Sequence record: NC_061443.1
Length of the DNA: 64,000 nucleotides
Direction: 5' to 3' (one strand)
Part shown: positions 22,801-58,225 of the stretch, one piece after another
Position numbering within the stretch: position 1 is the stretch's first letter
Layout: every line of letters starts with the position of its first letter
Notes under the pieces: model-generated
The model's input: only the letters and a program-made list of their open reading frames with translations
Databases searched by the model: none
Told to the model about the DNA's origin: nothing
Made by a program: the position numbers and the translations under genes

Positions 22801-22829
22801 AAAAGGGGTGGCTTCGGCTGCCCCTTTTT
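22801..22829. terminator. strong intrinsic terminator (possibly bidirectional)
   Basis: AAAAGGGGTGGC-TTCG-GCTGCCCCTTTTT. Confidence 0.85.
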
Positions 22830-41291: not shown

Positions 41292-42272
41292 ATGCGATTC
41301 GGATTCGCCTGCAAACTGATTGAACCGAACGGTAAGCAGCCCTACACAAATAAGAGCCTGAGCTATAAGCACTTCTCTGCGTTGTCTGCGCCTGACCAGC
41401 ACGGTAAACTCTTGGACGTTGTTACGCACAATCTGACTTCATTGCTCAACATGATAAAGCACGTTGGCAGACTGCGTACCGATATGCGTATGTTCCGAAT
41501 CACAAGTGAGTTGCTTCCACTGTATACTCACCCTAAGGTGTTTCACATGTACCTACGCCACGATATCGCGGCACTGGTTGAATCGTTACTTGCCTTATGT
41601 GGTGCAGAGGCTCGACGACGTGATGTGCGACTTTCGTTTCACCCAGGACAATTCACGGTGCTCGCATCTGATCGACCTGACGTTGTTCAGAACTCGATTG
41701 CCGAACTTGAGTACCATGCGTACTGCGCCTATCACATGGGATATGGCAGACGCTTTCAAGACTTCAAGATCAACATTCACCTGAGTGGTAGACTCGGTGC
41801 TACGGGATTTAGAACAGCCTTTAGCAAACTCTCTGACCGCTGCCGTTTGATGCTGACCGTGGAGAATGATGAAATCACTTCGAGCGTCGAGGACTGCTTA
41901 ACGTTATCCGACATATGCCCTATAGTGTTGGACATTCATCACCACTGGGTAATGACTAACGAATACATACGACCAGAAGATGATCGTGTCCAGAGAGTTA
42001 TAGACTCTTGGAGAGGCGTTCGACCTGTCGCGCATTACTCTGTGTCTCGACCTGAGTTCGTTAAGTCTCGTGGACTGCCTGATCAAAACAAGCTGTCTGC
42101 TAATCGTATGCAGTTACGAGCACACTCTGATTACTATCACAATGAAGACGTAAACGAGTGGGCGCTTTCGTTCACTGCTTTTGACCTAATGTGCGAGTCA
42201 AAAGCGAAGAATCTAGCTAGATCGAAATTGGCATGTTTTAGCCTCAACTCTGCAAATAACTGGACAAAATAA
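41292..42272 (+). CDS. uvsE: UV damage endonuclease UvsE/UvdE
   Basis: RFGFAC, MFRITSELLP, RLSFHPGQFTVL.S, INIH, LTVENDE, VLDIHHH, HSDY, DLMCESKAKNLA. Confidence 0.92.
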   Translation: MRFGFACKLIEPNGKQPYTNKSLSYKHFSALSAPDQHGKLLDVVTHNLTSLLNMIKHVGRLRTDMRMFRITSELLPLYTHPKVFHMYLRHDIAALVESLLALCGAEARRRDVRLSFHPGQFTVLASDRPDVVQNSIAELEYHAYCAYHMGYGRRFQDFKINIHLSGRLGATGFRTAFSKLSDRCRLMLTVENDEITSSVEDCLTLSDICPIVLDIHHHWVMTNEYIRPEDDRVQRVIDSWRGVRPVAHYSVSRPEFVKSRGLPDQNKLSANRMQLRAHSDYYHNEDVNEWALSFTAFDLMCESKAKNLARSKLACFSLNSANNWTK

Positions 42273-56709: not shown

Positions 56710-56722
56710 CTTTTGTGGTCTT

Positions 56723-56797
56723 GGCCCGCCCGTCCAGCAATGCTCACCCCCAATGAGGTGTCTCGCGCAGAGGCATGACGGTCACCGGGTCCTTTTT
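56723..56797 (+). ncRNA. candidate structured RNA (multi-stem junction)
   Basis: nested pairings GGCCCG/CGGGTC, CCGTC/GACGG, ATGC/GCAT enclosing CACC/GGTG and CTC/GAG, then TTTTT. Confidence 0.35.
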
Positions 56798-56853
56798 AGA
56801 GCGCACTTCCTAGTACGCTGTATAAAGTAAAACACAATCAACAGGAGGCTGTT

Positions 56854-57252
56854 ATGAAGTTCAACGATGTGTCCACTAAAGCTCAGGTGGTTCTTATGGC
56901 GAGTGCATTCGGTGGTGCGGTGGAAGTTCTGTCCCGTTCAATGGACGATGAAGGTCGCAAGTTTCTGGAAGTTGCGTTGCAGCGTGTCGGTCTAACCGTT
57001 GGTGAGTTCCAAACTCTTATCAATGACCTCGACGATCCTACCAGTCGAGAGATCGTTGCTGTTATGGAAACAGCGCAGGCAGAAGATTCTGAGCGTGATG
57101 CAGAAGCGCAACGCCAACGTCTGGCTGATGAAGAGGACGATGAAGACGAAGAAGCTGCCGACGACTCTGATACAGACGCAGACGGTTGGCAGGACCTGCA
57201 TGAAGATCGCATATGTCTCATATGTAACCGTGAATACTGCGTCTGTCACTAA
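56854..57252 (+). CDS. acidic protein with C-terminal Cys/His motif
   Basis: AGGAGG RBS; CLICNREYCVCH. Confidence 0.8.
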   Translation: MKFNDVSTKAQVVLMASAFGGAVEVLSRSMDDEGRKFLEVALQRVGLTVGEFQTLINDLDDPTSREIVAVMETAQAEDSERDAEAQRQRLADEEDDEDEEAADDSDTDADGWQDLHEDRICLICNREYCVCH

Positions 57253-57253
57253 T

Positions 57254-57308
57254 CTGCATAAATCTGGACAAAACGACGGTTGTCTCAAATAGCTGCCTGA
57301 ACTATACT
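57254..57308 (+). promoter_or_regulatory. early promoter module 10
   Basis: CTGCATAAATCTGGACAAAACGAC box, TTGTCT-17-TATACT. Confidence 0.8.
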
Positions 57309-57315
57309 ATATAGA

Positions 57316-57505
57316 CAGCGAGACAACGTTCTCTCTGAATGCCTTTGTAATTGCTTTGACCATGTGTTTTCTTTTTCCCGGCACATGGTCCTTTTTAAAG
57401 ACGGCTTCCAGCGAGGCTGCTTTAAAAAGGGTTCGATACCCTTTGAGCGCGTCGGGCTTTACGCGGTTTTCGCCTTACGTGCTCTCATGCTAAACCGCAA
57501 AGGAA
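57316..57505 (+). ncRNA. structured 5' leader or ncRNA with possible pseudoknot
   Basis: perfect 9-bp and 11-bp inverted repeats, an alternative hairpin, and a loop GCGGTTT complementary to AAACCGC just before the RBS. Confidence 0.5.
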
Positions 57506-57511
57506 ATTGAA

Positions 57512-58225
57512 ATGCCTACTACTTCACGTCCTAAGACAGAAGACAAGTTCTCCCGTGCTCGCGCTGCTAAGAACTCACCTGAACGTCAGGCAGCGGCTGC
57601 TAAGAAAACTCCACGAGGTCCTTCCTCGGTTCGTCCTAAATCAACGGCAGATCGTGAGCCTAAGATTCGTGACGAGGAGCGTGTGTACAATCTCGTACAT
57701 GCAATTCTGAGCGCGTGGAAAGCTGATGTGGGACATGCCGAAAACACGGCAGCATCTGCTGGTATCATCAAAGTGTCTCGTCGTAAAATTGAAGGTGCAT
57801 TGCGTGACCTCAAGAATACACGCTTCACTAAAATCCCGACGCTCATTAATGATATCCTGACAGGCTCTGATATCTGCGACGAGTTCGGCATGTGGGTGTA
57901 CGTCGAGCACGATAGTCCTGATTGGATTTTCGTCCGTCTGCCTGATAACAGCACACCTGTGATTCGTGCCGATATCAGTTACGAAAAGACTGGCGAAAGG
58001 TCCGCGTCTGTCACAACGTCCAGTGAAGCACTCATGGAAACGTTCGACGACAATGAAGACGAAATCGAGATCGAAATCTTCGACTGCACTGAAAGCGATA
58101 TTGAAGACCTCGAAGCTGCTGAGATGCGCAAGCGTCTGATCGATGCGAAAATCATCAATCCAGAAGCTGCCCCGAAGCTGTCACGCAATGACTTAATGAA
58201 GCTCTGCGCGTACTACAGCGCATAA
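57512..58225 (+). CDS. hypothetical protein with basic N-tail and C-terminal HeH-like module
   Basis: AAGGA RBS; IEDLEAAEMRKRLIDA...LSRNDLMKLC. Confidence 0.8.
   Translation: MPTTSRPKTEDKFSRARAAKNSPERQAAAAKKTPRGPSSVRPKSTADREPKIRDEERVYNLVHAILSAWKADVGHAENTAASAGIIKVSRRKIEGALRDLKNTRFTKIPTLINDILTGSDICDEFGMWVYVEHDSPDWIFVRLPDNSTPVIRADISYEKTGERSASVTTSSEALMETFDDNEDEIEIEIFDCTESDIEDLEAAEMRKRLIDAKIINPEAAPKLSRNDLMKLCAYYSA

Follow-up and report, generated by a model that had tools for sequence, protein, structure and literature searches.

Results

The locus, its promoter and its gene

The window analyzed here is the whole stretch of 64,000 nucleotides from sequence record NC_061443.1; the promoter, leader, and gene described below lie on its plus strand, and positions are counted from its first nucleotide. 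The source phage is the Erwinia jumbo phage pEa_SNUABM_2, a 265-kb Alexandravirus, to which the surrounding 1.5 kb is 100% identical; the same 1.5 kb shares 77-85% identity with ~45 related Erwinia and Dickeya jumbo phages. GenBank leaves positions 57253-57511 as an unannotated gap with a hypothetical gene on either side. Within this gap we found a promoter (57264-57308) composed of an upstream box, CTGGACAAAA (57264-73), a -35 element TTGTCT (57280-85), a 17-nt spacer, and a -10 element TATACT (57303-08). The -35 to -10 portion (57280-57308) is σ70-like and matches 9 of 12 consensus positions, which bears out the claim of an earlier note on this DNA that the region has a promoter upstream; the early timing given there is an assumption. 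From the position of the promoter, we predict a transcript start near 57314-57316. The structured region that follows is thus a predicted 5′ untranslated leader of the open reading frame (ORF) at 57512-58225, with a start placed by the promoter.

Further copies of the CTGGACAAAA box are found in the window at 42260 and 58282, and the box is kept in the leaders of relatives. The gene between the preceding cassette and the promoter (56854-57252 in the window; L003-L017 in relatives) differs among phages and is, for example, replaced by two small ORFs. That the promoter and leader are fixed while the upstream gene varies points to gene swapping at promoter cassettes.

The ORF at 57512-58225 encodes a protein of 237 amino acids with a basic N-terminal tail, a winged-helix core (~residues 52-144) carrying a β-sheet extension, an acidic linker, and two C-terminal helices. 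The product has no Pfam or PHROG match. Its AlphaFold model has a pLDDT of 76, with the basic N-terminal tail disordered, and the model is structurally closest to the winged-helix domains of RepE, Pi, Stn1, and CtsR (Z 6-7, which is moderate). We found 58 relatives of the product, all within the same phage group; their C-terminal ends vary, with alternative tails. The protein had previously been labeled HeH: Pfam did not confirm this label, although the fold does have a winged-helix core and two C-terminal helices.

Folding of the leader

All the pairings that had been proposed for the leader were found, upon inspection of the sequence, where they had been placed. The MFE of a 215-nt stretch is -72.1 kcal/mol, compared to -53.6 ± 4.6 kcal/mol for dinucleotide shuffles (z -3.98; 0 of 200 shuffles as good), and the MFE fold contains five hairpins: P1, P2, P3, a T-arm-like hairpin (P3′), and P4. 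P1 (57316-57337) is a small 5′-terminal hairpin with weak covariation (columns 13-16 with 25-28). Its sequence varies by clade, some hairpin is present in every clade, and it may act as a 5′ stabilizer. P2 together with a C-U5 tract occupies 57358-57396. Its 9-bp stem (57358-66 with 57382-90) closes a 15-nt loop and is followed by C-U5 at 57390/91-57396, which gives P2 and U5 a terminator-like shape. P3 (57391-57429) is a long palindromic hairpin with an outer stem (57395-400 with 57420-25) and an inner stem (57402-08 with 57413-19). The T-arm-like hairpin (57426-57444) has the stem AAAGGG/CCCUUU and a 7-nt loop, UUCGAUA, and fits GUUCNANNC. P4 (57445-57484) adjoins it directly, with no linker; the base of P4, GAGCGCG(U)/(A)CGUGCUC, pairs 57445-52 with 57477-84 in 8 bp that include one G·U, the inner stem pairs 57454-57 with 57472-75, and the apical loop contains an invariant UUUACGCGGUUU. 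The tail after P4 is 27 nt long and includes the ribosome-binding site AAAGGA (57499-504), which is separated by a 7-nt spacer from the ATG at 57512-14.

P3 can be extended by pairing 57391-94 with 57426-29 (57390-400 with 57420-30 as drawn in the earlier note) at the cost of the T-arm-like hairpin. The two hairpins had been described as mutually exclusive. They do compete, but the overlap is only 57426-29/30 (4-5 bases), and the MFE fold accommodates both by cutting the first to its 6 outer pairs. A long-range closing helix (57341-47 with 57498-504) is present in the MFE fold of the window yet is not conserved in AD1-type leaders, and we rejected it.

A candidate pseudoknot spans 57463-57498. 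The P4 loop GCGGUUU (57463-69) is complementary to AAACCGC (57492-98), which abuts the ribosome-binding site (57499-504), and the pairing may be lengthened by CUUU (57457-60) with AAAG (57499-502) over a 2-nt bulge. The loop/tail duplex has an energy of -10.5 kcal/mol, or -13.0 kcal/mol with the extension. Among shuffled sequences, 582 of 20,000 contained a 7-bp run and 81 of 2,000 reached the duplex energy (p ~0.03-0.04). The complementarity alone is therefore unlikely by chance to a modest degree. As a structure, a loop/tail pseudoknot would be geometrically tight, since a 7-nt linker would have to span the 13-bp P4.

Covariation among related leaders

Across 28 distinct homologous leaders, 93% of alignment cells form standard pairs and both partners change at 21 of the 48 pairs, although the aligned sequences are related and independent events are thus fewer than the cell counts. 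Neither figure was matched in any of 500 column shuffles, and in a control with the partners slid by 1-3 columns, pairing fell to 32-54%. The hairpins that had been listed from a single sequence are conserved across relatives, and compensatory changes support the predicted P2, P3, T-arm-like hairpin, and P4. In P2, two-sided changes occur at all 9 pairs, and the stem sequence is wholly different in the pEa_SNUABM_13, pEa_SNUABM_5, and Yoloswag types. P3 has two-sided changes at 7 of 13 pairs, with the bases of its extension invariant or nearly so. The T-arm-like hairpin pairs in 98.5% of cells and has at least four distinct variant states: the middle G-C is A-U in four sequences, and the closing G-C is A-U in L044, U-A in pEa_SNUABM_34, and G·U in L057. 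In P4, four pairs show two-sided changes; for example, the first pair changes from G-C to A-U in three sequences, and the pair at columns 74/95 changes from G·U to C-G in 10 sequences.

Between the covarying stems, several elements are invariant or nearly so in the 29 sequences: 57463-69, 57492-98, the C-U5 after P2, the bases of the P3 extension, and the ribosome-binding site, whose AAAGGA is unchanged in 28 of the 29 leaders. The loop/tail pairs can form in 100% of cells, six of the seven being invariant and the remaining one being G-C in 24 sequences and G·U in four. Because both strands are invariant except for this C to U change, covariation is unable to test the pseudoknot. Of the earlier claim of a pseudoknot, the complementarity adjoining the ribosome-binding site stands, and the pseudoknot itself, without covariation, is plausible from its sequence.

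Distribution and selection among relatives

Homologues were gathered from 16 GenBank phages, two metagenome contigs, twelve contigs found via the downstream protein, and one contig from a genome collection. In all 31 intact relatives examined, the leader lies directly upstream of the orthologous winged-helix gene. These relatives comprise three genera and metagenomic contigs (the Alexandravirus/Yoloswagvirus/Rivsvirus group of enterobacterial jumbo phages). A search with a covariance model of the core (R1) found one full copy per genome in pEa_SNUABM_2, AD1, pEa_SNUABM_5, pEa_SNUABM_13, and Yoloswag, and no paralogue elsewhere in the pEa_SNUABM_2 genome. The intergenic gap at 56710-56853 contains GGGTCCTTTTTAGAG followed by a small hairpin (56770-56830); it resembles a degenerate P3-like module and has no score with R1.

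The leader is kept far more strictly by related phages than the gene downstream. Identity to the window over the final 92 nt ahead of the ATG is 0.75-0.99 in each relative, compared to 0.37-0.86 (~0.5 in most relatives) at the fourfold-degenerate sites of the gene and 0.39-0.89 for the protein. The relative L045 is an example: its protein is only 39% identical and its 3′ leader 79% identical. In comparisons of all pairs of relatives, synonymous-site identity is also raised in codons 2-12 of the ORF (57515-57547), at 0.73 versus 0.46-0.53 further in, which suggests that the constrained element extends ~35 nt into the ORF. There are two possibilities for this signal: either the regulatory element enters the ORF, or the leader and the N-terminus travel together by recombination.

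We considered and rejected a hidden ORF or leader peptide: of 18 relatives checked, 17 have stops in all frames of the leader, and Yoloswag is left with a single open frame. A 65-aa coding sequence, gp311 (YOLOSWAG_310; L016:723-920), is annotated over the leader in that phage and is probably spurious, the other 17 relatives having stops throughout. An origin from the host was likewise rejected. E. coli genomes contain no similar DNA, and a search of 185,579 species genomes gave a single match, to a phage contig in a Raoultibacter MAG. This 14-kb contig (L055; JAVWLC010000023.1) bears the leader and gene of the phage group and is probably mis-binned. Another contig, of 266 kb in a Salmonella Infantis assembly (L047; GCA_007314735.1, AAHPOS010000001.1), appears to be a complete jumbo phage from the group. 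Metagenome runs, in which reads were compared over 971 bases, contained related phages only. A 151-nt contig from a wastewater metatranscriptome spans 57413-57552 and indicates neither transcription, strand, nor transcript ends.

Searches against Rfam gave no hits in the whole window at gathering thresholds and, at E up to 10, only chance miRNA-type hairpins (mir-218, mir-10, and similar), so that the region matches no family there; a search of the literature found no paper on the leader element. Judged from the sequences compared, the leader is a real, strongly selected, structurally supported, and undescribed RNA family limited to one jumbo-phage group.

A natural deletion and partial copies

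In phage phB78 (PP942979.1; L018:1201-1560), a single deletion has removed P4, the tail, the ribosome-binding site, and the whole winged-helix gene, joining the start of P4 to the 3′ half of a hairpin behind the gene. The promoter, P1, P2, P3, and the T hairpin, with a decayed loop, are kept. This joint loss indicates that the 3′ half of the leader is tied to the gene.

The 5′ half is also found on its own. Partial copies lie beside other promoter boxes and lack the gene; they combine the end of a gene or a promoter with a hairpin resembling P2, C-U5, and a P3-like hairpin in its fully extended form. They are located in pEa_SNUABM_13 (L064:1400-1600; MZ475891.1 ~242676-242876), in Yoloswag (L065:1450-1600 and L016:620-690), and in L056 (230-290), and could represent either modules of the terminator type or remnants of cassettes that were duplicated. 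The phage's genuine terminators, at 22823 and 26301, consist of a stem followed by CCUUUUU. Together with the gene-free copies, this form suggests that the 5′ half (P2-U5-P3) is possibly a terminator-type module or a derivative of one, and it may have a separate, non-translational role, such as attenuating transcription.

Resemblance to tRNA

The segment 57430-57441 reads GG-UUCGAUA-CC within the stem 57426-31/57439-44 and has the features of a T arm: a 5-bp stem, a 7-nt loop with U54 U55 C56 R57 A58, and G53-C61. In pEa_SNUABM_13, GenBank places a 95-nt tRNA-Glu(ttc) at the homologous position (MZ475891.1 241695-241789; L001:1471-1565). ARAGORN reproduces this call in that phage alone (1 of 29 loci) and found no tRNA or tmRNA in the window. 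The tRNA model RF00005 (threshold 29 bits) matched neither the region at E up to 10, nor the pEa_SNUABM_13 homologue, nor any other part of the genome. A conserved 7-bp acceptor stem is absent, as the 5′ strand before P2 varies without compensation (UGCUUGA, CGUCUUGA, CGUUUUGA, ACAUUGA, and others), and the supposed 3′ strand of the acceptor pairs downstream instead, in the covarying P4. The tRNA-Glu annotation in pEa_SNUABM_13 is thus very likely a false positive. In the pEa_SNUABM_34 clade, another 7-mer takes the place of the T-loop and a compensatory change preserves the stem; the loop is also altered in L055. The sequences thus argue that the T-arm-like hairpin matters, but that a tRNA-like identity is no universal requirement. 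These results weaken the proposal in the earlier note that the leader might be a tRNA-mimic noncoding RNA (ncRNA), which we consider unlikely.

Discussion

A model for control of translation

The earlier note had also proposed a cis-regulator of the ORF at 57512, and a conserved, structured, noncoding leader in cis to this ORF and new to Rfam is what the comparison revealed. We think it probable, though well short of certain, that this previously undescribed ~200-nt structured 5′ leader acts in cis on the translation-initiation region of a single winged-helix gene via the accessibility of its ribosome-binding site; among the functions that the leader could have, governing translation of this gene is the most likely. 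A terminator scan found no terminator-like hairpin between P4 and the ATG, which favors translational over transcriptional control at the 3′ end.

Three short segments suggest how such control could work. X (CCUUU, 57390-94) and Z (CCUUU, 57440-44) are both complementary to the ribosome-binding site AAAGGA, and Y (AAAGG, 57426-30) copies its core AAAGG. In our preferred model, a plausible switch-like relay among these segments, accessibility of the AAAGGA ribosome-binding site would set expression. When Y pairs with Z, the T-arm-like hairpin would form and the ribosome-binding site would be free; when Y pairs with X, P3 would be extended and Z released to cover the ribosome-binding site. The invariant P4 loop would pair with the 7 nt just 5′ of the ribosome-binding site, so that in the covered state the loop/tail pairing and Z would make up a 12-bp quasi-continuous helix across the initiation region. 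The balance would be shifted by an effector, likeliest a protein and perhaps the one that the gene itself encodes. When the core is folded under constraints, the free and covered states lie within about +2 to -10 kcal/mol of each other, and for 8 of 23 leaders the MFE of the core is that of the covered state. Pairing of Z with the ribosome-binding site is kept by all four Z variants apart from the single CCCUCU variant (L056).

Several observations caution against reading too much into this relay. Since Y resembles the ribosome-binding site, it is trivial that Z is complementary to that site. Pairing of Z with the ribosome-binding site, the X:Y extension, and the pseudoknot all rest on invariant bases, none of them with two-sided covariation, and nested folding across relatives gave no single conserved partner for the ribosome-binding site, whose unpaired probability ranges from 0.04 to 0.86. 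We rejected an apparent triple covariation of X, Y, and Z in pEa_SNUABM_36: the change on the X side belongs to the covariation of P2, and L047 has the same Y and Z change with X unchanged, which turns the extension pair C57390-G57430 into a C·A mismatch. As for the effector, autogenous control is attractive through the strict linkage of leader and gene, with the basic tail of the winged-helix product as further indirect evidence, and binding of the RNA by the product is hypothetical; a winged-helix fold is, however, typical of DNA binders, and the product has no known RNA-binding domain.

Other explanations

The features of the 5′ half raise the possibility that the leader is a transcription attenuator or a leftover terminator cassette, in which P2 and U5 would form an intrinsic terminator and the gene would need read-through or antitermination, giving it delayed-early timing. 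P2-U5-P3 would then be a module ending neighboring transcription units, and only the 3′ part would be otherwise employed, which is compatible with translational control. The P2 stem varies freely in sequence, whereas all 29 sequences retain the hairpin and the C-U5 next to it, and U5 is unchanged even when its A-tract partner differs. The occurrence of P2-U5-P3 beside other promoters (pEa_SNUABM_13, Yoloswag, L056), its retention in phB78 after loss of the gene, and the CCUUUUU form of the phage's terminators also fit a terminator. However, P2 loops are 10-24 nt long, compared to tetraloops on GC-rich stems in the clear terminators of this phage, and P2 was not flagged by the terminator scan, which allows loops of 3-8 nt and so does not reach the 15-nt loop of P2. 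U5 is followed by AAAG and is soon taken into P3, P2 showed no covarying partner that could act as an antiterminator, and attenuation leaves the stronger conservation of the 3′ 92 nt unexplained; overall, we regard this explanation as unlikely. The T arm prompts another reading, in which the P2-P4 part is released and works independently as a stable trans-acting or tRNA-mimicking ncRNA, either as a tRNA-elbow or T-arm decoy for host enzymes or defense nucleases or as a substrate of TruB, TrmA, or RNase P. The match of 57430-57441 to the T-arm consensus GUUCNANNC with G53-C61, a loop that is near-invariant in most relatives, the ARAGORN call in pEa_SNUABM_13, a genome without tRNA genes of its own, and the sequence-based prospect of a minihelix-like stack of the T stem on the adjoining P4 are all consistent with such an RNA. 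Yet the T-loop is replaced or altered in some relatives, the call is confined to one locus with nothing from RF00005, the acceptor-like 5′ strand is not conserved, neither a terminator nor an evident processing site lies ahead of the ORF, and the intact element is never seen without the gene and is truncated when the gene is lost, so that a free RNA of this kind seems quite improbable.

A sensor of a small molecule or ion could leave a similar imprint. If the leader were a riboswitch for a metabolite or ion, an aptamer would be formed by P3, the T-arm-like hairpin, and P4, together with the invariant bases of their loops and junctions, and its ligand would stabilize the pseudoknot over the ribosome-binding site. 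Covarying stems with invariant loops and junctions are the usual riboswitch pattern, a pseudoknot beside the ribosome-binding site is possible, and sequence conservation across genera is very strong. Such a riboswitch is nevertheless very improbable: no known Rfam class is matched, the regulated gene encodes a winged-helix protein with basic and acidic tails and neither an enzyme nor a transporter, the gene is not metabolic and its context suggests no ligand, and the element is confined to one phage group. We give slightly more credit, while still doubting it, to a broader idea of a sensor RNA, in which a compact fold, made up of a T-loop module, three stacked helices, and a pseudoknot covering the ribosome-binding site, would read a host-state signal to time a chromatin-like winged-helix protein. 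It would constitute a new riboswitch or tRNA-elbow-mimic class rather than an ordinary protein operator, and candidate signals are a small molecule, the ribosome itself, and, via the T-arm mimic, uncharged tRNA or the machinery that modifies tRNA. Finally, GCGGTTT and AAACCGC could be an inverted repeat in double-stranded DNA, to which a dimeric regulator (perhaps the winged-helix product) binds, blocking transcription just ahead of the ORF. Both 7-mers are invariant, pairing in RNA is indistinguishable from an inverted repeat in DNA, and the product has a fold like those of RepE, Pi, and CtsR, which bind DNA repeats. We give little credence to this operator, as its half-sites are separated by 22 bp and lie ~150 bp beyond the promoter, the P4 stem between and around them covaries as RNA, and conservation extends well beyond both 7-mers.

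Significance and comparison with known systems

To our knowledge, the cis-regulatory RNAs of jumbo phages are almost unexplored. The leader described here, an element of ~130-200 nt with four covariation-supported helices and absent from Rfam, is a ready candidate for an RNA family (alignments A3 and A5, model R1). It is near-invariant over three genera in which its protein and the neighboring genes diverge or are swapped, and it singles out one uncharacterized winged-helix gene as being under what appears to be unusually tight control of dosage or timing. The analysis also corrects the tRNA-Glu annotation in a deposited genome. If the effector of the preferred translational model is the gene's own product, the leader would be a new autogenous operator in a phage group that has so far been without genetics; if it is a metabolite or a tRNA-related factor, the leader would represent a new class of sensor.

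Four groups of known systems offer points of comparison. Like the leaders of T4 gene 32, E. coli rpsO (S15), and the α operon (S4), the phage element is a structured 5′ leader with a possible pseudoknot at or near the ribosome-binding site, it precedes the coding sequence of a nucleic-acid-binding protein (here a predicted one, of the winged-helix type), and its conservation continues into the first codons. Unlike these operators, to which it has no sequence or Rfam similarity, it is much larger, with five helices, and its product is a winged-helix protein and not a single-stranded DNA-binding or ribosomal protein; the pseudoknot is a candidate, and protein binding is hypothetical. With the thrS operator, stem I of T-box elements, and viral tRNA-like structures, it shares a canonical T-loop hairpin with a G-C closing pair and a predicted end-to-end stacking on the next helix. 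In contrast to leaders that mimic tRNA, it lacks a cloverleaf, conserves neither an acceptor nor an anticodon arm, and does not score with the tRNA model, its T-loop is dispensable in one clade, and Rfam identified no T-box element.

Its U-rich CCUUU segments complementary to AAAGGA, its Shine-Dalgarno (SD)-like decoy, and its two states close in energy recall the SD/anti-SD relays of translational riboswitch platforms and fourU-type thermometers. It differs from these relays in having neither a known aptamer class nor temperature dependence and in forming its ribosome-binding-site pairings on invariant bases only. The hairpin and C-U5 near repeated σ70-like promoters, with partial copies at other gene boundaries, resemble the intrinsic terminator-promoter cassettes of phage early regions. 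Unlike in such cassettes, the promoter here precedes the hairpin and U tract, which fall within the leader; the hairpin has a large loop and is followed by ~115 nt of more highly conserved, structured RNA.
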